Source: Guillardia theta CCMP2712 (taxonomy: Eukaryota; Protista; Cryptophyta). From it: 64,000 nucleotides of DNA. The translations under genes were made by a program, and so were the position numbers. The notes below the pieces were generated by a model, which was not told the origin of the DNA, made no database searches, and saw nothing but the letters and a program-made list of their open reading frames with translations. Location of the stretch: positions 146,535 through 210,534 of the forward strand of contig NW_005434623.1 of the NCBI RefSeq assembly GCF_000315625.1. Reading direction: 5' to 3'. The first letter of the stretch is position 1. Each line of letters starts with the position of its first letter. Of the stretch, positions 14,428 through 43,215 are shown piece after piece.

Positions 14428-14808
14428 GTGGCCCCACCACCCCACCCCCTTCCACAAACAGCTTCGCGCCATTCATGGCTTCTTCACACACATGCTTGTT
14501 TGGCAATCAATGCAAGGTACATGATGAAAGCATTCGATTGTATCAATGCTGAAGATGCAAGCCTGATGTGCCATCATCTTTGCGTGAATGAATATGTTGA
14601 TTCGGAAGGATACACCAGCTGTGAGTGTGAGCAACGTGGGAAAACAGCCCTTCCATCAATTCCTCAAGATGCACTTGCTTGCAAGAAGTCATGTAGAAGG
14701 ATCTAATCATGGCACAGAGTGGATGATGATGATGATGATGATGATGATGTGATTTTGATGATGGTGAGGAGGTGGTGGTGGTGGAGCACGAGCTGGAGCA
14801 CATGCAAC

Positions 14809-14849
<41 letters not shown>

Positions 14850-16231
14850 CGTACGGAGAAGAAGGGTGCCTTTGGGGAATGTGAAGAAGAAGAGCAAGAT
14901 GTAAGGGGGCAGATAGAATCAGTAAGTGGAATCTGTAAGAGATTGGATGGGAAAGAGATTGGATCTGTAAGAGATTGGTCAACCCGAAGACCTCCTCTTG
15001 GAGTTCTGTAAGCCAACTGATTACTTTGCTGTGTGAGATGAGAGCATGTTGCTTGTCAGCTTCGGAGTTGAGCACGAAATCGCAGTCCAACCCCTGAGAA
15101 GATCAAGAGTTGCTGGCAAGACGGGGGTTGGTTTCTTTGTACGTGAGGAAATGCTCGCACCAGCAAATGTCTTCGTTGCTGATAATGAAGCAAAAAGCTA
15201 CTTGAAGTTTCAGTCAAACATGTCTCTAAGGTCTGGCGTCAGGCATGTTTACAGAAGGAACAACCACTCAAAGACTTTCGGTGGAAGATTGATACAACCA
15301 TATATTGGAGTCCTACAAAGGTCTTCATAGATGAGGCGGCAGTAGGTGTCACGAAACTTAGCTCGGGAAAGGATGCAAATCCGTTGACGGAAGAGAATTA
15401 CATAGGCATAAGAAGATAGGATCGTGGGCAGCCTGACATATGTCACATTGAGTTGGGATGTCATCTGTAGATCCTTGAATACGGTTCAGATCCTGCTGCA
15501 TGCAACCCATCTGATGGCAAGATGATCATATGTTTGTTTGTGTTCCGAGCCTGGAGGATTTGAAACGCAACATTGCAGAAAACAACGATTCAGTCGCAGG
15601 CATGCTGAAGGAGATTCCGGAGATAGGGCAACATGCGACAGAACACCAGGAACAGGAAGAGGAACCTGACCTCGGAGACGTAAAAGCTGGCGCACTGCTG
15701 AATCGGAGCACTGTACAGTGTGTCAATGACGATCGAGCTGGCGTTCGTCACACTGTGACTCAGACTGATCAAGCTGATCTGAAAACGATTCGAATTTCTG
15801 GTGAAGCGAAATGTTTCAACAATGCATGGAATCTGTATCACACTGGCAAACATGCCAAAGGGATACCTCCTTCGGAGAAACTGCAACGAGCAAATTTTAA
15901 CAGAGCATGAAGCAAATAGTTTGCAGGCATAGCTTATCTCATGAAGTGCTTTGACCAATTCATCCGGCGAAGTGTAATGGAACTGAATTCCTTCTTTGAT
16001 AGTCGGTGAGAATCTTTGATGTTTCAATGCCGAGATGAAACATTCAAGAAATATCCAAAGGATTTCATCTCGTGGCTCAATCAGAGAGAAGGGGCAGAGA
16101 GCTCAAGTGATAGGAGTGGGCAGTTTGCACAGGCAACGTACTTCAAGAAAATGCGAAAGAAAGAAGCACCGCGACTAGATGAGATCAGGTGGTCGTTCGA
16201 AATGCGAATGATAACGAGACTGATGGCTTAG
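14428..16231 (+). pseudogene. degenerate coding-like region of unknown family (Cys/His cluster, acidic tract)
   Basis: Consecutive coding-like segments broken by stops and frameshifts (CHHLCVNEY..CEC..C, QPEDLLLEFCKPTDYFAV*DESML.., LKRNIAENNDSVAGMLKEIPE..). No family recognised. Confidence 0.3.
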
Positions 16232-16609
16232 ATTTTGCCTGTAATTGGATGGTTTAAGGTTTGTAAAACATATAATTCATTGTCAAGTGACAGTGAGTGA
16301 TATCATAAGTTGTAATAAACACAAGTTGCTCTGGTAAATCTTGTGAAACCTCGTTAGACGTTGCTCAGTTCTGGGTCAAGCAGCGAGATGGAGCTCAGAA
16401 ATTTGGCTGAGTGTTTTTGAGTCTTGGACCTCTGAGGCGGGTGTGGGTAGGGAGGGAGGGTGGGTGAGGTCCTAAACTGGTCTTTGGGTGGGGTAGGGGT
16501 CATATTCGGAAGAAGTTTATGTGAATGAGCACTAAACCTCTCAAAAAACTACAAAAGTGTATATATTTGTCCGGACTATATCTTACACCTCTAAGGGTGT
16601 TGTTAAGTT

Positions 16610-17360
16610 AGTGGCCAGGCCCGGCCCGGGCCCTCAGGCCGCATTATCATCCACACGAGAGTCGGCGGCGGTCACGGTGGGCCGCGCCCCCGCCGGGGCC
16701 GGGCCGTCGGATCGGACTGACGGTCTGATCCCCGGGCCCCGGCCCGGGCCACCCGGGCCGCGCGGCCGGGCCGAGTACGGTCCGATCATCCGGCGCCCCC
16801 GGGGCCCGGGGTCGGCCGGGCAGTGGCCCGGCCGACCCCAGTACATTCAATGATCGGATTGGCCCACTGCCAGGCTGCCCGGCGCCGCCGTCAAGTTGGG
16901 CCAGTTGGTTCTGAGAGGCGAGTCAGCGTCCGTAGTATGCTTTCAAGGCCCGGCCCGGGTGGTGATCATCCGATGATCGGATTGCCAGGGGAAATGGGGG
17001 TACTGACTCTGTGAGCGGATATCGAGCGGAGGCTGTACTAGATTACGCCCGGGGTGAGGTCACCGGCCCGGCGGGCAGTGCCACGGCAGTGACGGTGGCC
17101 GCGGCCGGCCGCGGCCGGGGCCGCATCATCCGATGATCAAACAGCGAGCAACGGAAGTTGTTTTGTATCCAACTGGCGTTGAACCTTGAACGCCGTTTCA
17201 GATCTGAGAGCCTGGAGACTCCGTAATATGATCATAGGCAAGTCATAGCAGGACACTGGCGAGTCAGGACCAGGTCCTAGTACGGTGACGGTGAGACGGC
17301 GAGTCACATTGCGGCCGACCTCAGTTTCAGCACCTCAACGGGCCGCCGGCCCGGTTAGCC
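16610..17360. other. GC-rich palindromic-word intergenic island
   Basis: GGCCCGG/CCGGGCC, GATCATCCGATGATC and GTCACGGT words. Confidence 0.7.
17103..17338 (+). repeat. ~240-bp dispersed direct repeat, copy A (empty site for the 42-nt unit)
   Basis: Aligns with 24625-24865 (CATCATCCGATGATCAAAC..TTGTTTTGTATCCAAC..GGCGTTGAACCTTGAACG..ATATGATCATAGGCAAGTCATAGCAG..TTTCAGCACCTCAA). Confidence 0.9.
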
Positions 17361-17726
17361 TCAGTCGATGTGGCTCTGTGCACAAGCTCACAGAAAGGAC
17401 AGCAACAGCTACAATAGGGATGACCGTACGTAGGAGGATCACGAAGAAGAGAGCAAGAACAGGCTAGGACCCATGGATGCGGCAGCAGGTGATAAGCGAG
17501 TCAGCTCATATCAGTCTACGACAGGACAGCAAGTGACAGGAACTTCCGAATAACGGTTCGATCAGAGAAGACAGTACTATCATGACTATTCTTCAGGAGG
17601 TCCTACGATGAAGGCACGAAACCACCTCTCAGCAGGTTGCAGACACACACAGGTTCCGTCAAGGCCAAGGGAGCAACTGTGTCAACTTGACTCGACCGTC
17701 AGGAAGCCGCGATGGATGATTCTCTC

Positions 17727-17819
17727 AGGCTCAGGGAGCCTCTAGGCTCAGGGAGCCTCTAGGCTCAGGGAGCCTCTAGGCTCAGGGAGCCTCTAGGCTC
17801 AGGGAGCCTCCAGGCTCAG
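17727..17819 (+). repeat. 17-bp tandem repeat AGGCTCAGGGAGCCTCT x5.5
   Basis: Units at 17727, 17744, 17761, 17778, 17795 and partial 17812. Each unit is a hairpin AGGCTC-AGG-GAGCCT. Confidence 0.95.
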
Positions 17820-18057
17820 TGGGGAGGCTAGGGCGTGACTCGGACCGGTCGAAGGACCATACGTTGCAGGAAAGGCCCGGAAAGGCCGAGAATGAGGTGA
17901 AGGGTCCCTGTGAGACTGGATTGCTTGAAGTAAACCAGCTTGTACATCTGTACCAATCTCTTATCACCTCTGTTACTTCTATGAACTTCGGAATCCTGAT
18001 ATTATTCCTGCGCGGCCAGGTCTGTTGAGTAAACATCGAGAGAGCATCAGCTACAGC

Positions 18058-20185
18058 ATGGCGGCGGCAACATTGCTAACTTTGCTGGCCCGCATGCTGT
18101 GGGTCGCTCAAGAAGCTACTCATGGCACAGTAAGCCTAGAATCAAGAGGATCGCACCTCTGTCTTTCTTCCAGTCTCACTGGTACAGTAAACATGATGCC
18201 GCCGCTTGCGAAGCTCCGTGGTGGTGGCCCTTTGGACGGTGATCACATTTTAGGGGATGAACTACCTGCAGGGATTTCCAAGCGGAAGGCATTGAAGATC
18301 AGCCTGCAACGCATTTGCGCGAGGTTGATGGTCAGCACAGATGACAGGGAGAAAACCAAGCTCCGGGCTGAGGAGATGAGGATCAACGACGAACTAGAGC
18401 TAGAGCGTATGCGAGTCGAACAAAGGCAACAAAGGAAGAAGATCAGAACCAGCAAGGATAAGGAGGAGAAAGCCGAGCTGCGGGCTGAGGAGAAGTCAAT
18501 GAAAGCCGAGCTGCAGGCCCAGGAGAAGTCAATGGAAGCCAAGCTCGAGATCGCGAGACAGAGGCTGGATCTAGAACAGCTACGGGCGAGGATTACCGCC
18601 AGCAAGGATGAGCAGGAGAAAGCCGAGCTGCAGGCTAAACTGATTCGAAGTGAGGATCAGTTGCAAAAGCTTATACTACTCAACTTGGGGTATGTGGATG
18701 ACTCACCGTATCTTGTCTACGATCAAAGTAAGCAGTCAAGAGATTTGCTTGATTTTGTGTGACGAATCGTTTTGAACAGGGAGGGATCAAGATTTTGAGT
18801 TTCTCGCTGTGCTGTGGAATACCTCTTGCTCGGGAAGCATCGATGCCAATCAAACCACTGTTCGTTTGCCGGAAGGAGCAAAACTGCTTGGTGGGAACGA
18901 GCTTTTGATACGTGAGTGCTATCGTGATGTCAAGGATATCATTGCGATGAACTTTGGTTTGGACCCGAAAACATTGAAACCAAGAGAAAATCGCACATCT
19001 TTTGAAACAATGATCATTACGGGCAACCCAGGGATTGGAAAGTCTTGTTTTGCTCTTTATTTGCTCCTGTATATACTTCAGACAGGAGAGAGCGTCTACT
19101 ATCAACGCGGAGACGATCACTTTCATTTCAAGGAAGGCACTTGGTTTCGTGTGAAGAATGCAGCTATATGCCGAGAATCAATTTTGTTCAAACACGGAGG
19201 TTGGTATCTGTGCGACCTTAACGCGGAGGTGTCAACGTATTTTTGTGCTCGATGTACCAAGAACATCATCGTCTCCTCTCCCAAACTACGTGTTTTCAAA
19301 CAATTGTTGAAGGAAGGCACAGCCAAACGGTTCTTCATGCCGGTGTGGACCGACGAGGAGATGGCTATCTTTCAAGAGCTGCACAAGACACGCTTAGATG
19401 CTGCAGTGGCAAAACAAACTATCGAGACTTGGGGAAACATCCCCAGAATGCTTTTAGAGAGTTCAAAGTCCAGTTTGATTCAGGAGGTTCATAAAATCAC
19501 TAGCATTGAAGATTTTGATAACAAGATCAGAGTTGTGTATGATCAAGATTTCGATCTCCCTTCGAAGCTTGTACACCTTGTTCCAAGCCCAACATATGAT
19601 TCCGTGAAGGCTCAGATCTGCTCAGAATATGCAAAGGCTTCGATTTCCAAGTGGATAATGAATCGCGATCGCAATATGGCCTTAAAAGTTGCCTTCAGCG
19701 CGAATAGTGATCGCGTTCTTTCAAATTGGATGCTGTTTGAATTTATTTCGCACCTCGTTCTCAGGCAAGAAGGGAAAAGAAAGGCAAGGAGGTTGGGGGA
19801 AGGGCATGATGACGGCACTCTGACTGAGATTGAAATGAAGAGAAGTGAATTTGTGGGATTCTGGGGAGGACCTGAAAGTTTGAATTGCCGTCTACAGAAT
19901 AGGACGTACTACAAGCCTTTATCCAAGACTTTCCCATGCGTGGATGCGTTGATGTTGTCCGAGAAACCAGAAGAGGTGTATCTATTCCAGATAACAACGG
20001 CTCAGCAGCATCCCGTGCTTTATACACCATTGTATGACATTCTTGCCAACATTACTGTGTTGAACAAAGTCAGGAAAGCGAATTTGATCTTTGTCCTCCC
20101 AGAAGTTCAAGCCGCATGCACAAACCTTGTCAATCGAGACAGAGCCGAGAAAACAACGAGGGGGTTTGGAAGACCTTGGGATTGA
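18058..20185 (+). CDS. Crinkler/RHS (CR)-type protein: signal-like leader, LRGG, coiled coil, P-loop NTPase and PD-(D/E)xK-like REase
   Basis: ORFs 18025-18762 and 18809-20185 join in frame through a GT-AG intron at 18728-18779 (DQ-R-RDQDFEFLAVLWN). Motifs LLIRECY, IITGNPGIGKS, IIVSSPK, FFMPVWTDEE, WGNIPR, KLVHL, LFEFISH, YYKPLSKTFPCVDA, LFQIT..H and LIFVLP match CR-NTPase+REase proteins. Confidence 0.8.
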
Positions 20186-20659
20186 GTTGGTGCAAAGTGT
20201 GATGTTTCTGTCTGAGGAAGATGCACGGGAGTGTGTGGGAGGCCAACATTTCTCGCTGGAAGAATAAGCCCCACCAGCTCATAAAAATCAATGAAACTCT
20301 TCTCAACTTGTTTCCTTGTAGGCCTTATCTTTCAACGATTAGCAGCCTTGCAGGTTTCAATGAGTGTAGATCTCTTTCAGTCGCGATCTTCTACTTCAGT
20401 CATCCATCCGTCCCGACAGCCCTGAATTCGACTCGAGGGTGACTGGCAGCATTTTAGCTTCCGCCAAGAGTTGCTTCATGACATCTTTCAATGGTTGCAT
20501 TCCTGTCTTCAAAGCGTGCTGGACACGAAGCCTGCATGGAGCGTCTAGCATGACAGGGAGGAGGGAGGAGGGAGGAGGGAGGAGGGGGGAGGGGGGAGGG
20601 AGGAGGGAGGAGGGAGGAGGGAGGAGGCGGATTTCAGTCTTCTCAGAGTTTCTCAGGGT

Positions 20660-22254
20660 GGTACAGGGATTCTCTCTTTGTTGGGTGTCTCAGCGACTGG
20701 TCGATATGTGCGCCTGGAGGCTTTGGAGGCAGAGGGCATGGTAGAGGAGAGAATCTTGTCCCTACTCGAGGTCTGCCCTGTCAACAGCGTCTCCCTCCTC
20801 TGATCATGGTGGGCAGATGGCAGTCTTCAGCTCTGTGCGGTGGAATTGTTCCCGTCACTGTCCTCCTCAGTTTGGCTCTTGTCCTCCAACGGATCCCGTC
20901 CTCGGGCAGTGCGTGTGCAAGCCCAACAGGATCGGCATCGACTGCTCGACTCACCTCCTGACGGACCATCTTTTTCTACCTCCCTATCGACATCCGCAGG
21001 ACAGTGAGGATCAAGTCAACTTCAGCTGGTTGCCAACGGCCCGTCCCTGATCATCTTTGACACCCCTTCTGTGTCAGGCTGAAAGCATCAGCATGGGACC
21101 ACCAGGAGCTCGAGGGAGCTCTGAGGGAGGTCGCAGCCTCTCAGGTGCCGTGAGACTCTCAGTTGCCTGCGACCTTAACCCCTCGCCTGCTGACGTCAGT
21201 TTCTCCAGGGCTCGGGATCCTGCGCTGCTCCTGCTGCTCTGGTCACGGGGTACCATCCAGGTGCTCGACCTCGCCTTGAGTAGACTGCTGAGCCATCGGA
21301 GAGCAGGAGGGCTGACGGCATCCCTGAGTCTGATCGCCTCGATGCTGTCCTTGTCCTTCGCTCTCAACAAGAAGACGCTCCTGTGGAGGAAAGCCGAGGT
21401 AATATCTCCTCTTCATCCTCCGTCCGGTCGAGTCTGACACCATCCAAGTGGCATCCTCCCTTCCTCCCTCGCTCTCCCTCTCGCTCTCGCTCCTGCTCTC
21501 GCTTGCTCCCTCCCTTCTCGGTGAGACAAGAGATTGCAGCTGGAGCGATTGCTCAAACCAAGACATGGACAACTTTCTCGAGAGAACGTTTCATCTCAAG
21601 GTCGATTGATCCTGACAGTCTTTGACCTCTTGACGGGAAGCAGGTGGAAGAGAGTGACAACACGCGCAGTGTCCAGCCCTTCGCCTGGGTCCCTCCCAAG
21701 TATCAGACCAAGGTGCCGCCAATGACTTTCGCTGTCCCTCCTGATGTATCCCAGGGGATGTTTTGGTGGAGGTCGGTGCTCAACAGCTTTCTCTTCAGGA
21801 TTCGACCTGTCCTGCCTTCTCCTCCTCTGCTTCACGTCCTCTCAACTCGTCCCTCCAGGAGCTTGCGCAGGAGCTCGACATCGACGGGTTGATGAAGCGC
21901 CTGGGCCTGTTGGATGGACCTTTCTTCGGGGTGCATGTCCGGCTGGTGAGAGACGTTGAGGTATCGTCCTTCTCCTCAATGCGGATGTCAGGGGGACTCG
22001 TGTGTCAAGTGGAAGGAGTTGTTCAACGGAGACTGCCTGTCTCCATACGAGCTCATCTCGCACACCAAGTCAGCTTCGCTCCTCTTCCTCACTCGTCTCT
22101 CTCACTCGCCTCAGGTTCCTCTCGGATAGATAGTCTGATGACCCGCACGCGCTCGATCACTTCAAGCAGAAGCTTCCAAGCCCGGCTACACGTGGTGGCT
22201 GTGGACAAATATCGAAGTCTGCTGGAGGAGATGGACAAGACTAAGAGCGAGTAG
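20660..22254 (+). CDS. putative alpha-1,6-fucosyltransferase-like (GT23/FUT8-like) protein with N-terminal EGF-like domain; ends approximate
   Basis: Spliced exons: CSRHC..GSC..GQCVCKPNRIGIDCS (EGF-like), GGLTASLSLIASML..KTLLW, WVPPKYQTK-GMFWWRSVLNSFLFRIRP, GPFFGVHVRL-GDSC (HVRxGD). Confidence 0.55.
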
Positions 22255-22711
22255 CTGGAAAACAAGCTCAAGCACCTCTATCCTCACTGCTGCTGCAGGT
22301 GGACGGAGAATCGGCTGAGGAAAGGAGAGCTTCCTCGCAGCCTGCTGCTTCGCTCTACCTTGACCGACTTGATCCGGCACTCCGACGCTTTCTGAGTCAG
22401 GAAGCCCGGCTACCGAGATCAACTTTCAACTATGGGTCGGACTCTGACTAGGGCTCCGAGTCGGTTCGAGCCGCTCAAAGAATGATATCCGACGGATAGG
22501 CTAACCTGTGCCATCATGTAGTGGTAGTTTGAGGCCTCAAGCCCGTCACCAGGCAGCCCCGGACGGTCCCAATTTGAGGGACTCCCGGAGGCGCCCGGCC
22601 GCCGCCGAGCCGCAGTGAGCTGGCGGCCGCCGCCTCCAGCGGCGGGTGACCGTGACTCACTGAGTTGTGACCGGACACCGCAGCGTGACTCGGACGCTCA
22701 GACTTCAACTT

Positions 22712-23041
22712 AGTTGACTCAGTAACTCGGAGGGTGAGCTAGTGACTTCAAGTTGACTCAGTAACTCGGAGGGTGAGCTAGTGACTTCAAGTTGACTCAG
22801 TAACTGAGGGTGAGCTAGTGACTTCAAGTTGACTCAGTAACTGAGGGTGAGCTAGTGACTTCAAGTTGACTCAGTAACTGAGGGGTTGACTCAGTAACTG
22901 AGGGTGAGCTAGTGACTTCAAGTTGACTCAGTAACTGAGGGTGAGCTAGTGACTTCAAGTTGATCGGACTCAGTAACTGAGGGGTTGACTCAGTAACTGA
23001 GGGTGAGCTAGTGACTTCAAGTTGACTCAGTAACTGAGGGT
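22712..23041 (+). repeat. 37-bp minisatellite GTTGACTCAGTAACTGAGGGTGAGCTAGTGACTTCAA, ~8 units with 39-bp, 41-bp and truncated variants
   Basis: Head-to-tail units with no unique spacers; internal hairpin CTCAG-TAA-CTGAG. Confidence 0.92.
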
Positions 23042-23099
23042 GGCACTGGGCCTGCCACCATTGTTTCAATGTCCTGCTATGAGAATTCTCTGTGAATTG

Positions 23100-24279: not shown

Positions 24280-24660
24280 CACAAGCCGGGCCGTCGGCCG
24301 CGGGGGCAACTTAGCCTGGCCCAAGTTCAGTTCAGTGAAACTCCGGAGTCCGAGAGTCACTGACTATCAGCTAGCCGCTCGTCGGACTGAGAGCGCGGCC
24401 GGGCGGTCCGTGACCGTACGGTCACGGTGGCAGTGACTGCACGGGGGGCCCGGCGGTGCCCCGGCGGCCCGGCCCGCGTACGGTACCGTTCCGAGTTCAC
24501 GGTAACGGTACCGTACACGGTGTGACGGCTGGTTGCGGCGCCCGGCCGGGCTGACTCACTGTGTCGGACTAGCCTAGCAGCGCGGCCCGGCGGCCCCGGC
24601 GGTGGCTCCCGAGTCCGCCCGGGTGGCCGGCCCGGCCGGGGCCATCATCCGATGATCAAA
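24280..24660. other. GC-rich palindromic-word intergenic island
   Basis: CGGTACCG, GTGACCGTACGGTCAC, GGCCCGG and CTAGCCTAG words. Confidence 0.7.
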
Positions 24661-24865
24661 CTTCTTTACTCAAAGTTAAGTTAAAAATCAGTACGAGAAC
24701 AACAGTGAGCAACTTGTTTTGTATCCAACCGGCGTTGAACCTTGAACGTTTCAGATCTGAGAGACTCTGTCATATGATCATAGGCAAGTCATAGCAGAAC
24801 AGTGCTGGCGAGTAGGACCCGGTCCTACGGTGAGACTCGTAGCGGCCGACCTTTCAGCACCTCAA
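24625..24865 (+). repeat. ~240-bp dispersed direct repeat, copy B (filled with the 42-nt unit)
   Basis: Aligns with 17103-17338 apart from the 42-nt indel and micro-indels. Confidence 0.9.
24661..24702 (+). mobile_element. 42-nt AT-rich unit CTTCTTTACTCAAAGTTAAGTTAAAAATCAGTACGAGAACAA (putative insertion)
   Basis: Absent at the equivalent position of repeat copy A (17140/17141); 40/42 identical to 43727-43768. Confidence 0.6.
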
Positions 24866-26227
24866 TCGACAACGTCACTGTGGATTACGTCGGCCGTTAG
24901 CCTAGGGAGGTCCCCGTGCTGACAAGCGAGATAAAGCAAAGACAGGGAGGGCAGAGGAAGCACACAGCCACGAAACCGCGCGAAGAAGAGGACGAAATGA
25001 GCGACAACAAGACAAGAATCAGAGAACTCAAGCTGAAGCTCGCGCAATGCCAGAAGATCACTAGTTTCTTCAGGTCCAGCCTACGATCAGATGTTGAAAG
25101 TAAGTTCCGAGAGAATTTTGTGCTGAGGTTGCAGCTGACACAGTTGTGTTGCAGAGTTGTTGGAACAAGTAGAAGCTCGCAAAATTTGGTTGTTGCACGA
25201 GATTCAAATGGTATGTAGATGCTTTCAGCATAACTGTTTGCAAACTTAATGGATTTTCTGCTCAGCTCGAAGCTTTTCAAGGTGATCACCGTCAAGGTGG
25301 CATGAAAAGGAGGAAATCTACTCATTATGCCAGCGTTGCATCAGGAGTGATGATATTCGAATGATGAAATATCGAACCACTTTGACATCAACCAAATATC
25401 CCTGTACTACATGTAGCTCGTCTGTAAATAAACCGTGAGACAATGAAGTTTCAAGTGAAACTATCAGATCAGATCCTGCTCATTCAATGTGAAGCAAAAC
25501 TTGCACCCTCTGGCAACCGTGAACTGAAGTATCGCTCCTGCACTGCCGCGGATCATCGGATCATCGGATTGAGACTCTCATTGCTGAGAGTCAGGGCCAC
25601 GCTTTTCCGAAGTTCTGCTCAGGCTACTGCCGTTGATCGGAATGGTTCACGGTTCACGGTTGGCGGCGTGACCGTCGAACCGTCACTGGCCGGTATCAGG
25701 CTACTCTATGATGATACCTGAGTAAACCGATCACCGATATCATCGAGTCAATCTTATATGGGCCAACACTGTGAATCAAGACGTCGATCGGACTGTGAAT
25801 GACATGCCGCAGTGCTTAGTGCAGGCACGCCGCCGCCTGCGCCGGGGGCCGAGCCCGCTGATGATGATACATCCGTTCCGCTGCGGCTGTCAGCCTGGGG
25901 GGACTCCGGAGGGGAGAGGTGGCGATCGCCGCCATCGGCCTCAACTCAGTCCAGCGCCCGGCCGCCCCACGCGGCCCGGGCCTGGCACTGGCGGCACACG
26001 ATGATGAGCCTGTCCGGGCCGCCGGACTTGCACGCTGCCGGCCGGGCTCAGTCATCATGAGGATCCTCAACTTCAGGCAAGATAAAATCCACAATGGATG
26101 CGCCAGCTGGAGACAGGGAGGAGAGGACAAGACGAGGAGAGGGAGAGGGAGAGGAAAACCTAGAAGATGAGCGATTGCAACTGCCAGGCACTCGAACGAG
26201 AGGAGGCTGCTTTCTTAGCTTGCGACC

Positions 26228-29200
26228 ATGCTGAGACTGGACCCTGACATGCATCGGACAAGGAAAGGAAAATGGCAGACCTTGTTTGTCTTGCTAGCCT
26301 TCATTCTCTGTGCTCGCTGCGAAACTTCAGAGCTCGAGACACTGGACATTGAAGAGGAAGCGAGACAGTTTTGCCTGGAGAACCATTACCATGAAGCTTG
26401 CTGTGAGTCAAGATACCACGGAGGAGAGATAGATTGCTCCTCTTGCTCTGAAGAGGTACACAGTAGTATCGCCACATGTACCCAGACGTACATCTCAGAG
26501 CACAACAAAAGACAGAGAGCGATTCACTCTGCTCCCTTGCTCCGGGTCGCCCTCCTCTCTCCCCTCCACTGGTCTGTGCATGACGCGAGCAGCAGCAATC
26601 CTTTGATGGTCTCAGGCAAAATCTTCGGGATAGATTCCACAACGCCCCCGGACACGCACATCAACGTCCTCCTCTCAGGTTTCTCAGAGGTTGCCGTCCC
26701 TCTGTCCTCCTTCTGCTCTCTCAACCCCCCGCTCGCTCCCTGCGAGTTTCGCATCCCGGTAGGAAGAGACATGCTGGGGAAGGGTACGCGCGTCCTGGCT
26801 GCTCGGCTCGTGAAGGGAAGCGAATGGTCGAGCAGCATTGGACCTGTAGCAGAGCTCTCCTTCCGCTGCCAGCCTCGCTTCCTCTCCTCCTGGGACCAGA
26901 ACTCGTGCTGGAAGGGATTCTTTGCTAGCACGCCGCGGTATGACGCATGCTTGCGCGAGGATGGGGCTCGAATGGTTGAATGGAGGAGGAGGAGGATGGG
27001 GAAGAGAGGGGGAAGGGAAGGGGAAGAGGAGGAAGGCAAGGGTGATGAAAAGTGTCTGCAGCATCTTTGGACGCACAAGGAGTGGAAGGATGTGTCCGAA
27101 GAGGATGGGGTCGGTTCGGGTGATCTCAAGTGCCTAGGGAGAGAGTGGAGGTCACCGCAGCGATATGATGGGATGAGCCTGAATGTCACAAAGGGACAGC
27201 AAGTTGGACTCGTGCTGGTGCTGAGAAGGCCGAGGAGGAGGGAGCTGAAACGATTCCTCCTCGAGTTGCAGCAGCAGAGCGAGGACGCAGGGATTGTTGT
27301 CTTCACTGAGGACCCCCCTACTGTTGCCTCCATCCTGTACCGTGTATCCTCTAGCTTTCAAGTTCACTCTATCGGAAAACAAGGGCAGGAGCAGCAAGTC
27401 ATAGAGGCTTTCCTCTCCAGGGCCAGTGAGACATTTTCTACCCTATGCGCTCTGTCCGGTCAGCCAACCTCTGCTCAGGATACTTCTTGGACGTGCAGGT
27501 TTGTTCTCTTTCACTCGCTCGCGACTGTTCCGTGATAATCTCTCACTTCTTCTTCTTACAGCTCCAGCTCTAACTTTCCTCCTCACTTGATTGATACGAC
27601 TGGTGTTGTCCTCCCTGACGACAACAACCAACAACGGGCTACCTCCTACGTCTTCCCGAGGCTCTACGGCCTTATGGGAAACGTCCTCTTCCAGGCACCT
27701 ACCCCGTGTGCTCTTGGCTTCCAGTGACTTCCCTTCTAGACCGCAGCCGCTCTGACGTTAGCATGGGACCTTGACGAGATCGGTTTTCATGGGAGGCAAG
27801 TCGTGCTGTGTTGACGTTTCACGTGCAGGAGGCTGATGATTATGCAGGAGGTGGGAGGTAGGGTTGCCTCTGCCGCAAGATCACAAGCAGGTGACAAGTC
27901 TACAGAGCTGGAATCTTGTGCAGATTGAAGTTCCATACCCTTCTTCTTTCTCCTCCTCCTCCTCCTCCTGCCCTCAGCCTTTCTCTTCCTCAAGAACTGG
28001 CTGCCTGTCGACCTGACTGTCTTTGATTGATGTTTCGTACTTGTGTCTTCTTTCTCTTGCATCTTCTTTCTCTTCTTGAACATTCACTTGTTTACATCTC
28101 GACAAGTTTAATCGACGTACTTCACAGTGTGCAAAGACATTCATGTCTTCAGTGTTCTCATCGCTCATGATAAATAGACTTGACCTTACATCACATGAGG
28201 TACACTTGTGGTTGTTTGTCTTAATTGACATGCTCGAAGGTGAACGACTTGATGTATCTACAAGAGGGAAAGTGTCATATTTGTCATCACAATCTTACAG
28301 AAGGTATCTTGTACATTTTTCATTCAAGTTTGGTTTCTGAGATTGTTTCGTCAGATGCTTTGACAGCCTCTTCAGGAACTGATCTGATGATCCATGGATG
28401 GCGACAGGTTGGATGTGATCTTGCAGGAGTCAGATGAGAGGAGAGGAGAGAAGAGGAGAGGAGAGGAGAGGAGATCAGGTGAGATGAGATGAGATGAGAT
28501 GAGATGAGATGAGATGAGATGAGATGAGATGAGATGAGATGAGATGAGATGAGATGAGATGAGATGAGATGAGATGAGATGAGATGAGATGAGATGAGAT
28601 GAGATGAGATGAGATGAGATGAGATGAGGTCTGGGGACTCTGGATCTTTGTTTGCGAGAACAATACGGCAGACTAGAAGGGGGGGGGGTAGAAATAGAAA
28701 TAGATTCTTACTTCACCTCATTGCAGTCCTACAAGTACTTCTGGCATCGACGTGCAAAGATGATCGATGCCTTCTCCCTCCCTCCTCACCTCGAACAAGT
28801 TGCACAGGTAAGACATGAGGACTATAAGGAGGAGGAATGAAGGGGAGAGGGAGTATTGAAAGTGAATGGAACAGAGAGGGTGGGGAGCAGTGAGAAGCGA
28901 ATGGTGAAAGACGAAATGGAGGGAAGTAGAGGAGGAAACGGGGAGAAATGGACAGGGGAGTGGGGCAGCAGGGAGGAGGGAGGAGGGATAGACGAGGGAT
29001 AGAGTGAGTGAGTGAGTTAGTGAGTGAGTGCCAGAGGGAGGGAGGGAGGGAGGGAGGGAGGGAGGGAGGGAGGACAGAGAGAGGAGGGAGGGAGGGGTTG
29101 GGAAGGGGACGAGATAAAGACGCGAAAAGAGCACGAGGCTAGTGGGAGGAGCATACTTGCTGACCTGCTCACAGCACCACCTGAGGAGGCTGATCGGGGA

Positions 29201-29953
29201 AGAGGCTGATCGGGTGACGAGAGGAGCGAGGGAGGAGGCAGACTAAGAGGAGGCGGCAGGAAGTAGTTTCAGTCCATATCAGACGCGGGGACCTCCTGTC
29301 AGAGAAAGGGACCTTGCTGTCCCTCTCCTACTACGAGAGGGTGAGATGAGGTGTTGATAGAGATGTCCGGGTGAAGCAGGAGTAGGCGTTCGAGGAGTTT
29401 GACGAGGATGTCCTGTTTCTTGTCTTCTCGGATGACATCCCATGGTGAGATGAGCGTCGGCGATCTGTGCGGACGAGATGTGCTTGTTGTTCATTCCTGC
29501 GATCATGAGAACTTCATCTTGTTCGCTTCTGCCATTATGAGATGTACTTGTTGTCTTTGTGTGCACTCTTGATGGGATGTGGCAGGTGCAAATCGACGGC
29601 TCTGTTTCGAAGACTCAAAAACGGTAAAGAATGTTTACACCTTCAGCATGGAAGTCTGACTGAGCTGATCTTGACCTCAACTCCTTGCTTCTCGATTTTG
29701 CCCTCAATCCTTGTGCTGGATTTTGTTCTCGCCCTCCCCTATCCCCCCTCGCTTCCCCTCCCTCGCTTGTTTCTCCAGTCGTCTTCGTGGAGCTCGGAAT
29801 CGACTTCCTCGAGCTGCGCATGATGTCGATGTGCGATCACCACATCGTTGCGAACTCAACGTTCAGGTGAATCCTCCTCCTGCTCCTCCTCGTGCTCCTG
29901 ATCCTTCTCCTGCTTCTCCTGCTCCTCCTGCTCCTCCTCCTCCACCTCGTTCT

Positions 29954-29995
<42 letters not shown>

Positions 29996-30596
29996 CCTCC
30001 TCCTGTTCCTGCTTCTCGTTGTTGTCGTCATCGTCACCATCATCGTGATCGTCCACCTACATTTTCTCATTGTCAACCTCCCCTTGTTGTTTTTGACCTC
30101 CCTCCTTTTTCCTTTTCACTGCGAACTTCGTTCGTCAGCGTCTGGGCTGCATATCTACATAGCCTTCCACCTTGGAGGAGGAGGAGGAGGAGGAGAAGAA
30201 AGAGAAAGTCGAAAGTCGTATGTCCTCAGATTTGGGGCAGAGGCGACGAGGTGAGAGAGGGAGCGAGATGAAGAGAGTAATGAAACAGGAATGGAGGCAA
30301 GCGATGGGCAGAAAGGAGGAAGGAAGAGAGAGAGGAGGGAGAGGAGGGAGGGGAGGGGACGGACTTATTCTAATGGCAGGGTGGAAAGCAATTCGGAGAG
30401 GGGGAAGTTTATCCACCAGAATGGATTCGCATCCCCAACGACTTTGTCAGGTGATGAAAGGGGCTGGGCTGAGGAGAAGGAGGAGGAAGAGGAGAGGAGG
30501 AGGAGGAGAGGAGGAGGAGGAAAAGAGGGGGAGTGAGGAGGAAGAGGAAGAGGAGAGGAGGAGAGAGGATGAAGAGAATAGGATCTTATGAGATAG
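26228..30596 (+). CDS. glycosyltransferase family 11 (alpha-1,2-fucosyltransferase-like) with long N-terminal extension, multi-exon
   Basis: Signal-like LFVLLAFILCARC. Exons give RLYGLMGNVLFQ, SLQSYKYF, VVSVHIRRGD, FLVFSDDIPW-C, LRMMSMCDHHIVANSTF-SVWAAYL, KVVCPQIW, LILMAGWKAI. Confidence 0.8.
28481..28625 (+). repeat. (GAGAT)n microsatellite, ~29 units, intronic
   Basis: Perfect pentamer run. Confidence 0.97.
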
Positions 30597-30835: not shown

Positions 30836-33220
30836 CTACTTCTTCATCAACAGACCCGAGAAGCAGCCGATCTTGCTGTGGGAGCCCTTGTTGGTCGCTC
30901 GAAAGACCCCCTTCCCCTCCTGCTCGTGAAATCTTTCCGAAGCTCTGCATATAATCGCCTCCTTCTCTTCCCTCCTCCTCCTCCACGACACTGGATCTCC
31001 CCGCTCACCAGGGGGGGCAGGAGCAACATGCTTCATCGCTGCGATGATACACGAGTGAACCTCCCGGACAACTCTCCTCCTCCGCTCCTCCTCCATCGTC
31101 TGCCATGAACGAGCCGCCTCCTCCTTCACTCCTTCGATGCTCAGCCCTGCCGTCTTGCTTTCCTCTTGCATCCTTCTCCTCGTGATTGCTACCCACACCT
31201 CGTAGAGGCAGAGCCCATGGCTGAGATAATACTTCGCTACTCGCTCCCCCTCCTCCTTGCTGTACAAGTCCATCTTGTCCATCGGCTCTGGAACTTCCCC
31301 CCTCCTCAGGTCCTCGGCTGCGTCCTGCGAGGAGGCAAACCACTGCTGCCCCCTTGCCTCTGGGCTCGCAAACCCAAGTCCACTCCCCAGCAGCCTTCCG
31401 GCTCTGACGTCTTCCACTGTCTCCGCCACAAGCTCTCGAGCCTCTTTGAAGTAGAGCTCGATGTCAGCTGGGGTGAGCTCAGCACGGGCAGTGAGCGAGT
31501 CCTGTTTATCGCAGTCGGAGAAGAAGGAGATGTTGCGAAGGGACCGCTGCTGCTCTTCGCTCCCCCGACTCCTTCCGATGTACCGCCACTCCCCCGTCCT
31601 AGGAACGAGCCGGTAGAGAGGTAGGAGCTTCCAGCCGTGCTCGGCGACGAACAGAACGGCATTAACAAGGAAGCGGGCCGTCTTTTCCGAGAGGAAGAAG
31701 TTGAAGTTGAGCCGCACGAACCCGGGTTTGATCGCTTCGTCCCCCTGCAGGGCAGCCGTCTCGATCACGAACCCTGCCGAAACGCTTATGTCAAAGAGCC
31801 GCTGGCCAAAGGGGCCGGCGCACGCGCACCCTGCTCGGCTCTGGATGCCGAAGAGGTCGTTGAGCAGGCAAGCGACGAAGTTGTGATGCAGCAGCCGCTT
31901 CCCGTGCGCCACCACGAACGAGACGATGCTCAGCCGCGGCAGGTTCTCGTCCCCCAAGATGAACACCTTCCCGCTAGCCCCCCATGCTGCCTTTGCCTCC
32001 TTCCAGAAGTGACGCTCCCGCTCCTCGATCGTTCTCACTCCCACCTCCATCTTCAGTCGGAACACCAGACCGCACCGGATCGCTCCTACGATCTCCGGCG
32101 TGCCTCCCTCCTCCCTCTCCTCGACCGAGTCTAGGTACCGATGCTCGAAGTTGGACACGAACAGGACGGTCCCTCCCGCTGGCGTGCAGGGAGACCCTCG
32201 CGCCTTGGCGTCCTCATATACGGCCTTCTTGTTGAAGACGAGGACCCCGGGAGTCGACGGCCCCCCCACGAACTTGTGCGGAGAGATGAAGACAGCGTCC
32301 TTGTAGGCCAGAGGCCTCGAGGGGTTCATGTCGATGTCCACGTAGGGCCCAGCAGCCGCGTAGTCGAAGAAGGCGAGGGCTCCGTGCTCGTGGAGGACTG
32401 TAGCGATCTCTTCTACATCCGTCAGCACTCCCGTGACGTTGGAGGCGGCGGAGAATGATCCTATCTTCATCCTCCTCCCCCTGTTCTTCAACAGCACCCG
32501 GCGCAGGTCGTCAAGGTCGACTCCTCCCTTCCCCTTCAGCTGCACCTCCACCACATCCGCGTCGCTCTCCCGCCATGGCAGGATGTTGGAATGATGCTCG
32601 TACGGTCCGATGATGACCAGCGGCCGCTCCTTCCTCTCCAGGCTCTCCCTCCACCCCTTGCTCTGCTTCAGCAGCTGAACCATCTTGTAGATGGCTGCTG
32701 TGCATCCTGACCCCGCGAACAACACGACGTCTTTGCCTTCCTTGCCGTGAACGCTCTCGAAGATGATGCTCCTCGCTTCCTCGCGGTACTTGGAGGTCTG
32801 CTTCCCCGTGTGTGACACCGTCGTGTGCGTGTTGGCGTAGTGGGGCAGCACTTCATGCCGGATCGCGTCCTCAATGAACGTGAGCGAACGGCCGGAAGCT
32901 GTGTAGTCCGCGTAGACGAGCTTGCGAGTCCCGAAGGGGGTCTGAACAGGAGCACATGATCCGATTACAGACGCCTCAATCTGCTCGAGCAGACTTGCTT
33001 CCCCCCGGTCGTTCTGAAAGGGCACAGTGGGAGCCAGCGAGGCTGTTCGGCTGAAGGATTCGCTTGCCTTTTGGCTGGAGAAAGAGCCGTCGGGCTGGAC
33101 GGGCTGGAACTGCATCTTGCTCACCATAGAGCTCTCAGGTTCTCCGTATCCAAAGTTGGTCCCTACTTCCAGCACATCCTCAACGATCTGCAGCTGGAGG
33201 TCGTCGAAGGAAGTGGCCAT
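30836..33220 (-). CDS. PLP-dependent aminotransferase class V / cysteine desulfurase-like protein, intronless
   Basis: YADYTASGRSL, YANTHT, EHHSNILPWRE, GSFSAASNVTG, FFDYAAAGPY, FISPHKFVGGP (PLP Lys), EEGGTP, GIQSRAGCACAGP, KPGFVRLNF. Likely start MATSFDD at 33220. Confidence 0.9.
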   Translation of the reverse strand: MATSFDDLQLQIVEDVLEVGTNFGYGEPESSMVSKMQFQPVQPDGSFSSQKASESFSRTASLAPTVPFQNDRGEASLLEQIEASVIGSCAPVQTPFGTRKLVYADYTASGRSLTFIEDAIRHEVLPHYANTHTTVSHTGKQTSKYREEARSIIFESVHGKEGKDVVLFAGSGCTAAIYKMVQLLKQSKGWRESLERKERPLVIIGPYEHHSNILPWRESDADVVEVQLKGKGGVDLDDLRRVLLKNRGRRMKIGSFSAASNVTGVLTDVEEIATVLHEHGALAFFDYAAAGPYVDIDMNPSRPLAYKDAVFISPHKFVGGPSTPGVLVFNKKAVYEDAKARGSPCTPAGGTVLFVSNFEHRYLDSVEEREEGGTPEIVGAIRCGLVFRLKMEVGVRTIEERERHFWKEAKAAWGASGKVFILGDENLPRLSIVSFVVAHGKRLLHHNFVACLLNDLFGIQSRAGCACAGPFGQRLFDISVSAGFVIETAALQGDEAIKPGFVRLNFNFFLSEKTARFLVNAVLFVAEHGWKLLPLYRLVPRTGEWRYIGRSRGSEEQQRSLRNISFFSDCDKQDSLTARAELTPADIELYFKEARELVAETVEDVRAGRLLGSGLGFASPEARGQQWFASSQDAAEDLRRGEVPEPMDKMDLYSKEEGERVAKYYLSHGLCLYEVWVAITRRRMQEESKTAGLSIEGVKEEAARSWQTMEEERRRRVVREVHSCIIAAMKHVAPAPPGERGDPVSWRRRREEKEAIICRASERFHEQEGKGVFRATNKGSHSKIGCFSGLLMKK

Positions 33221-34104
33221 GGAGATCTTGGTATGTCGATCAACAGGAGGAAGGGGAGAGGAGCAGGTTCGGAGAGCAGGCGGATCCTGATATCCCCCTG
33301 TCACATTCCCCTCCACAGCTCGCAGTTTGCACCTTTGCCCACCACCCACCCCCCTTTACCCCACTTCTTTGGGGAATTGGAGGGGTCCATAACTGAAGAC
33401 AAGATACAGTTGTGCCCCACCCCCTGTACTTGTCACCCGTATCCCCCATTACTTTACTTCATACAGTACCACCGGTCCTCTCCCCTGCCTTGCACCATGT
33501 ACCCCACCCTGTTTCTAAACCACAAATTAACACCTGATATCGTAACGATATCTGTAACGGTAAAATTTGTACCAAACTAAAATTAGCTGAAAGTTTTACT
33601 GAACACCAAAAAAGGCTGTCCAGGGATCACCCAACGGCCGCGGTACAATCTTTCACTCAATTGTCAATATCCCTGCTACTGAAAACTTTAGTCAAGTGGT
33701 GTCACCGAGTACTGGCAGGAGCAATAGGAAACGGTCAAGTTCCGCCCTCCTCCGCCCCCTTTGCAACGGCCCCCCGGCCACTGCAATAATGAGTGCGCCT
33801 CAGGTTTATGTCGTGGGGCAGAGCCTAATTGAATGAAGATGATTAAGAAGAGCAATTGTCTGTCTGCTGTGCTGCTGCAATTGAGCCCTTAGTGCTTTGA
33901 GGGAGGCGGGCTGCCTGCCCTTTCAGGAGTCCGCGCTAAGGGAGAAAAATCTGGTCATGGATAATCATCGACCTTGAAGTGGGGGGACCGTCAAGCGGGG
34001 GAATAGTAGTAGTAGTACGGTCGGACCCCATCAAAGCGCCTGGGGCCGAGACTTTGAACGTTTACTCTGCGGCGGCCGGGGTTGCCGTCGGCGTTCCGAG
34101 GCAC

Positions 34105-34170
34105 TAACTTAGCTTTGAGTAAATCCTCGACTCTCTGAGTACTGATCTTTAACTTAACTTAGAGTAAAGA
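34105..34170 (-). repeat. two adjacent copies of the AT-rich dyad unit (34105-34123 partial, 34138-34170)
   Basis: TAACTTAGCTTTGAGTAAA and AGTACTGATCTTTAACTTAACTTAGAGTAAAGA in GC-rich island 33990-34270. Confidence 0.8.
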
Positions 34171-34270
34171 TCATCGCCGTGGCGCCGCGGGCCCGGGGTA
34201 TGATCAGTCGAGGCTCGTAAGACCAGTTTTAAACTTAACCGTAACGTTGAGTGTACGGTAGTACCGGGGG

Positions 34271-37200
34271 TCAATATGTACTGCTGCTTAGTGCGCCTCC
34301 TCCTCCGCCGCTCCTCCTCCTCCTCCTCCTCATGGTTGTCTTCTTCAGGCTCCTCCCCATCTTGCCCGGGCTTCGACGCCTTGATTCACTCCTTGCCGAG
34401 GCTCCTCCCTCCGTCCTCCCTGCTCCTCCCCACCTCCTCCTCTGATTCGTCCGTCCTGTTTCCAACCTGTGACTTCATCCTTGTTCATCGTCTTGCCTGC
34501 CGGCGATCCACAGCTCTCCTCTCAACCTCTTGCATCTCTCAATGAACACTCCTTCAACAATCCTCCTTCACGCTCGTTTCTTCTCGTCTTCTCGTTGCGA
34601 TACCGACGGCCCTTTTGGTCCTCCAGGCCCGAACTCTTGCAGGAGGCTCTGCCTCCCTTGTCATCCTCCTCGTTCGAGACGTTTCCTCCTCCTCCTCCTC
34701 CTCCTCCTCTCCTCCTCCTCCTCCTCCTCACCTTGGGTATGGAAGGAAGACTGTACTCCCATTCGTCCTCGGCTTCCCCGTGGAGAGGGTCGACGTCCGG
34801 CCTGAGTTTTACCTATTGCAACAGAAGGGAGGAGGAGGCGGAGGAGGAGCAGGAAAAGGTGGAGGAGGACAAGGAAGAGGAGGAAGAAGAGCAAGAGGAG
34901 GAAGAGGAGCAAGAAGAGATTGCTTGACATCAGCAGAGCTAAGCAGAGCAGGCAAACACTACCTCCTCCCCTGTGTAGAAGTGCTGAACAAAGTTGTACT
35001 GAACGTCCTGCAAGGGTACAGCAATCATTCGCCTTGCGATGACAGTCAGGAAGGTCACTTCACCTCGACCGTCAGCATGTCGATCATCTTGCTGATCGCA
35101 AGCGCAAGCTCGAACTTGGACAACCTGTTCTCATTGATGTCCTTCATGACACTCGAGACCTGCGGCAAGCATCATGACTGGCAGACGCCCTGGGGAGCGA
35201 CAAACCTGGTTTAGCTTCATCCTCCACCCGACGAGGTAGTAGAGGAGGACAAGCAGAGACGTCACGAGCCCGCTGAGTGACGTCTCGGTTGCTTCTTCGA
35301 AGGAGGAGAGGAGGACGATCATGATGAGGGAGAAGATAAGGTTTGACAAGTTTGTCAGGATATAGTCGAAGTCTTTCACTGACGAGTTGCACGCCCTTGA
35401 GGCGATTTGCTGCCAGATCTTGCCGCATCTGCAAGGAAGGAGATTGGGGAGGGGAGGAGGAGGAGGGAGGAGGAGGAGGAGGAGGAGGAGGAGGAGGAGG
35501 AGGAGGAGGAGGAGGAGGAGGAGGAGGAGGGAGGAGGAGGAGGAGGAGGAGGAGGNNNNNNNNNNNNNNNNNNNNNNNNNNNNNNNNNNNNNNNNNNNNN
35601 NNNNNNNNNNNNNNNNNNNNNNNNNNNNNNNNNNNNNNNNNNNNNNNNNNNNNNNGAGATGGAGATTGACTCTATTGTAAGACCTCGGGTTTCGAACTGG
35701 CCGTTCTCACACATGACTTGCACATAGTTGAGGTAACGGAGCTGACTTGGGGTTAAGATCTGCTCATCTCCATGAAGAAGGCTGGATTTCCTAAGTCGTT
35801 TCCATGCGAACCACTCCATGGCATCGTTGACATTCGGAGAGAATTTGCAGTAAACCAGCCAGGCACAAACCATCACAGCTGTCCTCCCCTTTCCGTTCCT
35901 GCAGTGGACCGCAACCACGTGATTTGAGTCATCTTCGAGATACGATGCCGTGTGCTCCAGGAAGGAAACAATCTGCGAGAGGAGGGGAGGATTATGATTC
36001 ACTGTCGGAATCCTTTCCACTCTGTTTCCAAACAACCTGGCATCATAAGATCTTTCAGAGCAGACATTGAAGATGAGATGATTGGCAGGGTGCTTCAAGT
36101 AGAAGAACCTTTGAACCTCCTCAAGAGAATTTGCAAAGATTGCTTCAGTTCCAACTGCAGGAAGTGACATCGCGATGCATGTGGGAGGAGGAGGAGGAGG
36201 AGGAGGAGGAGGAGGAGGAGAGGAATGGGAAAGGGAGAAGGGGTAGATATGATTAGTGCAATGCCAGAGGATGATGAAAGAGAAATGTGGATGAGGTAAA
36301 ATGAAAGGAGTTGGGAGTTGGAGTGGAGGGAAGAAGTAACGAAGATCAGAAGGCAGCAAGGAGAAAAGGCGACAATGAAAAATTGGCACGATGAGAAGGA
36401 GGAAAGAAGGGAGAGGAAGACACAGAGGAGAGAATGAGGAAGAGGCAAAAGAAAGAGCACGGGAATGGAAGAGAAAGACAAAGAAGCGATTGAAGGGTTT
36501 CCGGAAGAGGAGAGGAGGAGGGGGAGGAGGAGGAGGAGCGGCAGCGACATAAGGAGGAGGATGAGGAGGAGGAGGAGGAGGAGAGGAGGAGAAGGAGGAG
36601 GAGGAGGAGAGGAGGAGGAGGAGAGGGAGAGGAGGAGGAGGAGGAGGAGGAGGAGGAGGAGAAAATGAAGACCTCCAAAGGTTTGACAGGGCCACAACGA
36701 GGTGGAAGATCAGAGTAACTTGCTCCTCCATGAGGGGGAAGATGGTGCTGTTAAAGAAAACCTCCGCAGCCTTGATGTGCCTCCTGGAGTTGCGGGCAAG
36801 GACAAAGTGGTAGAGCACGAGGAGAGGAGAGAGGAGGGCGAGGATGATGCCGAGGAGGAGGAGGACAAGGAGGAAAACGAGGGGTACAGAGAGGAAGAAA
36901 GCTTCTTTGAGGAGGAGAACGGCCCAGAGCACGGACTTGATCTGAACAACTCCGAGCAGGGGGATGGAGACGTTCCTGGTCGGGTCGGAGGGGAGGGCGT
37001 ACACATGGGAGACGTGTCCTCTGAGTACGTCGAGGTAGAGGACGAGGGAGGCAACGAGGGAGATGAAGGAGATGATGTTGAAGTCTTCCTCGGGAGGGCT
37101 CAGGAGGGTTTTCCTGGTCCCGCTCCTGATCGCTCCTCCTCTTGACCCGGGCAGGAATTCGTTGATCTTGCCGTCGCTGAACATTGCGCTCCTCCTCCGC

Positions 37201-42950: not shown

Positions 42951-43215
42951 CCTCGCCTCGCCTCGCCTCGCCTCGCCTCGCCCCTCATCTCATCTCATCT
43001 CATCTCATCTCGTCTCGTCTCGTCTCGTCTCGTCTCGTCTCGTCTCGTCTCGTCTCATCTCATCTCATCTCATCTCATCTCATCTCATCTCATCTCATCT
43101 CATCTCATCTCATCTCATCTCATCTCATCTCATCTCATCTCATCTCATCTCATCTCATCTCATCTCATCTCATCTCATCTCATCTCATCTCATCTCATCT
43201 CATCTCATCTCATCT
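42951..43215 (+). repeat. compound pentamer microsatellite (CCTCG)n(CATCT)n(CGTCT)n(CATCT)n
   Basis: Read directly from the sequence. Confidence 0.95.

Follow-up and report, generated by a model that had tools for sequence, protein, structure and literature searches.

An ultra-short intergenic repeat family in Guillardia theta and a close relative

Intergenic DNA of the cryptophyte Guillardia theta CCMP2712 holds a family of very short repeats. The family is real, occurs on several scaffolds and in a close relative, and is apparently undescribed; in the literature we found no description of the motif, or of a similar repeat family, in cryptophytes. Whole units are about 25-55 nt long and share a 22-nt core that is nearly invariant (21-22 positions). 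Spread by descent is well supported by sequence comparison, namely by near-identical copies in unalignable DNA, by linked subfamily variants and by one filled/empty pair of sites. Tentatively, we read the unit as an ultra-short repeat family of the Guillardia lineage that multiplies by being copied and inserted from a fixed end, in a SINE-like manner or by templated synthesis.

The window, that is the whole 64,000-nt stretch of DNA analysed here, belongs to the nuclear scaffold JH993015.1 (GCA_000315625.1) and is read in record orientation, with base 1 at about record base 146,535. Its longest ORFs encode eukaryotic proteins (ABCG half-transporters, a class-V aminotransferase, a dual-specificity phosphatase and a DUF1499 protein), and a protein search with a window ORF found paralogues in G. 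theta CCMP2712 and homologues in Hanusia phi. Low-complexity sequence of the GGA/CTC type is common within and between the window genes, N gaps lie near 272 and 35556, and pentanucleotide arrays, (AGATG)n and the complementary (CTCAT)n, stand 14 kb apart at 28432-28628 and 42984-43234. In all, ~176 kb were sampled, about 0.2% of the genome.

Copies of the unit and their anatomy

With a profile HMM built from the copies as they stand, the window yielded 11 copies scoring 21-33 bits and one weak match. The 14-mer TTACTCAAAGTTAA occurs nine times with at most one mismatch (0.00 expected from 100 shuffles) and a 29-mer of the unit four times with at most three mismatches (0 expected). The most recurrent 11-mers of the window outside low complexity are words of the motif. 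The sequences that the initial annotation had quoted at 24661-24702, 17140 and 43727-43768 were correct on re-reading, and every partial copy that it listed exists. Both orientations and both of its subtypes are real, and our results support its description of a discrete recurrent block, too short and too weakly palindromic for an ordinary MITE.

Copy B (24661-24702, +, 32.5 bits) has A at the variable position and GAG after GTAC. Its closest twin, at 43727-43785 (+, 33.4 bits), is identical to it at 40 of 42 positions over 43727-43768; matching between the two runs slightly past the block (49 nt at 94%), and the last 8-12 bases of B's block are common to the 43727 copy only. This twin had been placed in unrelated flanks. 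The identity was reproduced, but the right flank is not wholly unrelated, as ~15 nt past the 42-nt block are common to the copy at 34137-34172. The latter (-, 30.3 bits) belongs to a second subfamily, with G at the variable position and T after GTAC, and opens a direct array of two units spaced with a 45-nt period; it lies ~0.9 kb upstream of the aminotransferase ORF (ATG 33220, -). The array's second unit (34095-34126, -, 24.2 bits) is short, its similarity ending after ~21 nt. Beside the twin, a short copy at 43679-43710 (-, 24.7 bits) has one change in the core, ends after ~22-30 nt and forms a head-to-head, hairpin-capable pair with it; another short copy at 43967-43998 (-, 29.6 bits) has a perfect core and loses similarity after ~25 nt.

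Two copies stand 134 nt apart in unrelated flanks, both ~1.6-1.8 kb upstream of an ABCG gene (9569-11329, +). The one at 7790-7832 (+, 23.4 bits) has a 7-nt insertion inside the core and the direct repeat CGAGGGGCCCG on both flanks, and the one at 7925-7959 (+, 29.3 bits) has a single change in the core and 3 nt inserted in its right part. A second-subfamily copy at 1381-1413 (-, 31.3 bits) lies between GC-rich inverted words, and a diverged short copy at 14164-14196 (+, 21.4 bits) has a degenerate inverted partner near 14240-14262.

GC-rich words of the CCGGGCC type, partly inverted, accompany several of the AT-rich units: they occur at 1350-1375 and 1425-1460, with the 1381-1413 copy between two inverted blocks, and around 7770-7790/7835-7850, 24600-24640 and 34175-34200. 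A tandem array at 22712-23042 (37-nt period, ~8.6 copies) contains words, including GACTCAGTAAC and GTGACTTCAAG, that echo words beside some units. GATGATC stands directly left of the unit in copy B and at 34172.

Strong copies outside the window were found on the same scaffold JH993015.1 at ~100 kb distance (locus L005, 14901-14935), on JH993045.1 (L004, 3179-3212) and on JH992977.1 (L009, 4422-4454 and 14566-14596); the profile search gave no strong copies in L010 and L012. The total is 15 strong copies in ~176 kb. The 112 kb outside the window contribute four of these, which means that the window is enriched. Weak matches number five overall versus these 15, that is, there are few decayed copies. 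The G. theta genome measures ~87 Mb, and scaling from 176 kb gives, very roughly, 3,000-7,000 copies per genome.

The copy from a close relative lies in the ENA metagenome contig L006 (ERZ930071, 5088 nt), in a spacer without a counterpart in the window. This contig is 96% identical to window 18017-22375, in coding and non-coding DNA alike, and is therefore assigned to a close relative. It is the sole contig obtained from a relative, and none of the window copies falls in the part that it covers. In it, the STAND-like gene of window 18017-20185 is duplicated in tandem, and the spacer upstream differs. Copy B has one exact match of 26 nt in the JGI metagenomes, at 983-1008 of the contig Ga0065711_1027012 (L002). 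This contig is AT-rich and eukaryote-like, has no second copy in 4.85 kb and gave no Pfam match in its ORFs. The match is perhaps due to chance, except for six extra bases, as about one 20-mer match is expected in so large a collection.

We counted column agreement with copy B over 13 other copies, ungapped and aligned on the core (the copy at 7793 was excluded for its internal insertion). Agreement is at background left of -2, 5/13 at -2, 9/13 at -1 and 10-13 of 13 from 0 to +20; it then falls to 5-8 of 13 from +21 to +29, partly lowered by 1-nt indels, and is at background from +30 onward. Hence the left edge is sharp and the right edge graded. The left core is present in 15/15 copies, the right part in 8/15 and the right part alone in none. 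Measured from the fixed end, the copies extend over 21 to 54 nt, which is the shared 3' end with variable 5' truncation of SINE-type repeats, and past the fixed end there are only 0-5 bases, which vary.

In subfamily 1, A at the variable position is linked with GAG after GTAC (24665, 43731, 7793), and in subfamily 2, G is linked with T after GTAC (1411, 34168). Units occur singly, in direct arrays with a 45-48-nt period (34095-34172; L005 14901-15017, three units, one with a perfect core and the others decayed), close together in unrelated flanks (7790 and 7925) and head to head (43679 and 43727). In four of the nine islands there are 2-3 copies, whose flanks are unrelated. Within otherwise unalignable DNA, identity between copies is 93-100% over 19-49 nt. 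Between paralogous loci, the motif is the sole shared stretch of non-coding DNA (31-34 nt at 94-97%); the coding sequences are 77-85% identical.

The unit had also been described as an imperfect dyad, which is real but weak. Its 14-nt arms match at 9/14 positions, a value reached by 2.5% of shuffles; over 38 nt (24662-24699) the match is about 13/19 as judged by eye, with two TTAA at the centre. For single units, DNA folding gave no advantage over shuffles (z -0.4 to +1.0), and the head-to-head pair alone folds strongly (z -5.4), by construction.

A filled and an empty site

A ~230-bp repeat occurs twice, as element A (17103-17330, +) and as element B (24625-24870, +), which are 84-92% identical in pairwise comparison; the unit is found in B and not in A. 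In their alignment B has 42 extra bases: the block is present at 24661-24702 and missing at the paralogous 17140-17142, in agreement with the initial annotation. The junction has a microhomology of 3 nt, AAC, which stands at 24659-24661 and 24701-24703 in B and once in A (17140-17142), so that A has a single AAC where B has AAC, 39 nt and AAC. As AAC lies on both sides of copy B, the inserted block proper is 39 nt (24662-24700). This is the one filled/empty pair found. There is no third copy of the A/B repeat in the ~176 kb sampled, and no more pairs came from loci L003/L005, L004 and L012, which align in coding sequence only or hold no copy, or from the large inverted repeats of L004 and L005.

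At A/B, insertion is not distinguishable from microhomology-mediated deletion without an outgroup. A 39-nt deletion between AAC repeats would look identical, and both this and the single pair count against copying and insertion. It may be that nothing was inserted: A would have lost the unit by AAC-AAC microhomology deletion, or B would have gained it, by ectopic gene conversion or templated repair, from a copy such as that at 43727, and the motif would be old and spread mainly by local duplication. The 3-nt direct repeat exactly at the junction fits such a history, as do the match of B and the 43727 copy past the block and the tandem arrays with their 45-48-nt period. However, the left limit of the indel falls within 0-3 nt of the family boundary, as would rarely happen with a random deletion, and local duplication cannot yield near-identical copies on different scaffolds with unrelated flanks. 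We consider this history decidedly unlikely. The indel had been said to match the limits of the conserved unit, which is right for the left limit and not for the right, where conservation fades from +21 to +30.

Transcript contig L008 starts at 17453, and element A lies 120-350 nt upstream of this 5' end; element B lies ~1.4-1.6 kb upstream of the glycosyltransferase-11 gene (26249-30454, +). Because the transcript starts just past element A, we regard A and B as promoter-side sequences. The repeat adjoins two unrelated genes on their upstream side, and the downstream genes are not paralogues. The transcript is spliced, a 41-nt GT..AG intron in the 5' UTR (window 17557-17597) having been removed. 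A second gap of ~38 nt (18742-18779) could be another short intron or a difference in repeat length.

The surroundings of element A have a counterpart on another scaffold. Window 14285-14392 and 17362-18018 match L010 (7744-7202, reverse strand) in five collinear patches of 85-100% identity, which tie an upstream/5'-UTR module of the window to that scaffold. The window is ~3 kb longer (14393-17361, element A included) where L010 has 57 nt, and 18017/18018 is where homology ends, both to L010 and to the second gene copy of the relative. The palindromic word ATCATCCGATGAT(C) is repeated in intergenic DNA at 16964-16978, 17124-17138, 24643-24657 and 25551-25569, and at L004 14398.

We compared the flanks of the copies for direct repeats. 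Candidates measure 9-11 nt at the 7790 copy, 7-9 nt at the L006 copy, 6 nt at the L009 14566 copy, 5 nt at the 7925 copy, 4 nt each at the 1381 and 43967 copies and 3 nt (AAC) at copy B; a duplication of constant length was not found across copies (3 nt at B, 4-11 nt or absent at the others). When left and right flanks of different copies were combined as a control, the excess was modest (p about 0.02-0.04), with repeats of at least 4 nt in 5/15 copies versus 13% expected and of at least 7 nt in 2/15 versus 1.4% expected. At random intergenic positions of this repeat-rich window, direct repeats of at least 9 nt arose in 5.3% of trials, and 2/15 is then not significant (p about 0.19). Target-site duplications are statistically unproven by these controls. 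The earlier proposal of an excision scar or a TTAA-type element is not supported, as there is no fixed duplication.

The same evidence bears on cut-and-paste transposition. The unit could be an extreme MITE mobilised by a transposase in trans, or the joined termini or footprint of a longer DNA transposon. Its discreteness as a block, the 3-bp flanking repeat at B, the weak dyad with two central TTAA and the strong fold of one head-to-head pair would suit such an element. However, there is no fixed-length duplication, single units fold like shuffles, two-ended transposition does not predict truncation from one side, and the sample contains neither a longer element with these ends nor a transposase domain. 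We find this origin very unlikely. The unit lacks the appearance of a cut-and-paste element bounded by two defined termini. Truncation from one side, the absence of inverted termini and flank repeats of unequal length point instead to synthesis from a fixed end.

Position relative to genes

Whether copies are intergenic was judged from public gene calls for window 2018-43116 and from ORF reading for the remaining copies. The public calls are old automatic models, at least one of them truncated. Besides the ABCG and glycosyltransferase genes already mentioned, they comprise EMP70 (before 2018 to 5786, +), a second ABCG gene (12018-13592, -), models of 234 aa (18058-18762, +), 284 aa (20738-22451, +) and 58 aa (30856-31029, -), the aminotransferase (31580-33115, -), a phosphatase (35790-36185, -) and IGPS (41081-42697, -). 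The aminotransferase model, of 512 aa, looks truncated, since the region 30836-33220 holds an uninterrupted 794-aa ORF from ATG 33220 (-) whose Hanusia phi homologue has 797 aa (93% coverage). The ABCG genes (9961-11327 and 12020-13386) form a convergent, inverted duplication with 92% identity over 1367 nt; paralogous ABCG pairs on other scaffolds stand head to head in a 3.9-kb, 98% identical palindrome (L004 4350-8268 and 10196-14117).

In annotated stretches 46% of the DNA is genic, yet none of the 10 strong copies there falls in a called gene (p about 0.002; about 0.013 by islands). Elsewhere the copies are intergenic by ORF reading. Copies occupy central parts of 2.6-3.9-kb spacers, with 0.7-2.9 kb to the next start codon, apart from 1381-1413, which stands in the middle of a ~340-nt spacer between two likely divergent start codons, ~165-195 nt upstream of the likely EMP70 ATG (1577) and ~150 nt from a possible minus-strand ATG (1236). 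The island at 43.7 kb occupies a divergent spacer between IGPS (-) and an RWP-RK-like ORF pair (+). To the right of this island, the two ORFs (44215-44687, +) overlap, contain an RWP-RK-like stretch and are probably one gene with an intron.

The main rival to copying and insertion is a cis-regulatory module. The core would be the recognition site of a putative sequence-specific DNA-binding factor (promoter, boundary or architectural); selection would keep this site in promoter-side intergenic islands, often in homotypic clusters, and copying would merely seed the sites. We rate this as possible, though somewhat unlikely. It would account for the absence of annotated strong copies from called genes, for the copies in divergent or tandem spacers, with none between the convergent ABCG genes, and for the copy midway between divergent start codons. 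In tandem contexts, five islands agree with the direction of the downstream gene and 1-2 are opposite. Three further observations agree with selection on a binding site no less than with copying and insertion: islands where 2-3 copies of either orientation have unrelated flanks, the L005 array in which a perfect core adjoins two decayed units, and the small number of decayed copies overall. However, the orientation bias is not significant (p about 0.1), and copies stand anywhere from 0.15 to 2.9 kb from the nearest start codon. One copy (L009 4422-4454) lies between convergently called genes, two copies point at 3' ends, and several paralogous promoters (L004, L010, L012) do not have the motif. 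The sole known transcript 5' end (17453, L008) has no unit nearby. Furthermore, 21 uniformly conserved positions, linked variants and a clean indel of 39-42 nt speak for identity by descent and against a degenerate binding site.

Copying and insertion and a selected module are not mutually exclusive. A combined form, in which the core is the putative recognition sequence of a DNA-binding factor and marks promoter sides or boundaries in thousands of cryptophyte islands seeded by copying and insertion, appears to us unlikely as a whole. Clustering in promoter-side islands is compatible with a candidate binding site, and the dyad is marginally above chance.

Possible origin and relation to known systems

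A parent element was sought in several ways. All-against-all comparison of 300-nt flanks revealed no longer shared element beyond the unit, except the ~15 nt common to the 43727 and 34137 copies. Of the window's 113 ORFs of at least 110 aa, 20 were scanned with Pfam and gave no transposable-element domains, an exact 21-mer of the unit was not found in IMG/VR, and the ~176 kb sampled contained no related longer element coding for a transposase. The unit had been suggested to be the terminus of a long transposable element or endogenous virus, and these searches speak against it. Neither a source RNA gene, poly(A) tail or Pol III-type head nor a reverse transcriptase or partner element was seen in the 176 kb.

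Known RNAs were likewise not recovered. ARAGORN found no tRNAs in the window, and Rfam gave nothing at gathering scores across the whole window; the best matches by E-value were generic hairpins (25 bits versus an 80-bit threshold), and permissive scans of two islands returned generic hairpins below threshold. The published G. theta spliced leader is a 17-mer (PMC5619915) that differs from the unit and is absent from the window even with two mismatches. A retro-copy of a spliced leader or other known small RNA, or a small-RNA/miRNA gene, is already largely refuted, and we consider it barely credible. The minus strand does look like an exon end followed by a GT-type donor, and the inverted pair at 43685-43751 weakly resembles miRNA hairpin models, but the leader is a different sequence, nothing reaches an Rfam gathering score and there is no tRNA-like sequence. 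The earlier idea of a leader followed by a donor also loses support because nothing is conserved past the supposed donor. Of the broader suggestion that the unit is a reverse-transcribed small RNA, one feature survives, the common minus-strand 3' end with a variable other side in 15 copies, while its spliced-leader form does not.

For the preferred reading of copying and insertion, we propose that copying would start at the fixed end and stop at varying points. This would fit target-primed reverse transcription of a short RNA (SINE-like or 'tailless' retroposition), whose sense would be the strand complementary to the motif; another repair process with templated synthesis would leave the same pattern. 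Copies would then persist in gene-flanking, promoter-side intergenic DNA, any regulatory effect being secondary. The full length of ~55 nt, shorter than known SINEs, counts against this reading, as do the statistically unsecured flanking duplications and the failure to find a source RNA gene, tail, head or partner element in the 176 kb.

A mobile unit would rank with the shortest eukaryotic interspersed repeats known. Its insertions could then be used to follow polymorphism and the turnover of intergenic DNA in Guillardia; this DNA seems to be pieced together from short modules that are shared between sites. Should the core prove to be a selected binding site, it would offer a first handle on cryptophyte nuclear promoter or boundary architecture, of which none has been defined so far, and would aid annotation. 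As the site of a factor it would parallel, in a protist, the insulator or transcription-factor sites that repeats carry, and no nuclear cis-element of the lineage would have been defined before it. On either reading it is a feature of ordinary non-coding DNA and not a new kind of system.

Among known systems, SINEs and tailless retropseudogenes resemble the unit in being non-coding and high in copy number, in inserting as a block with a common end and variable truncation, and in having subfamilies and candidate flanking repeats of unequal length. The unit differs in its length of only ~25-55 nt and in having neither a tRNA-, 7SL- or 5S-like head nor a tail of poly(A) or clear simple repeats; a partner reverse transcriptase was not seen in the sample, and the flanking duplications are not statistically secured. 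MITEs are also short, non-coding and abundant near genes, with discrete filled and empty sites, whereas the unit is below their usual length, is truncated from one side and lacks convincing terminal inverted repeats and a constant target duplication. Bacterial REP/BIME repeats are strong palindromes with a dedicated transposase, and the unit is eukaryotic and does not fold; they resemble it in their ~35-45 nt, their strictly intergenic location, their arrangement as single, tandem or inverted copies and their very high copy number. Mammalian SINEs carry long transcription-factor and insulator binding sites, which are dispersed by the repeats. Compared with such repeat-borne sites, the unit is uniformly conserved and not graded by position. 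Like them, it has a core of ~20 nt that is dispersed by copying and occurs, clustered and in either orientation, at an estimated few thousand intergenic sites.
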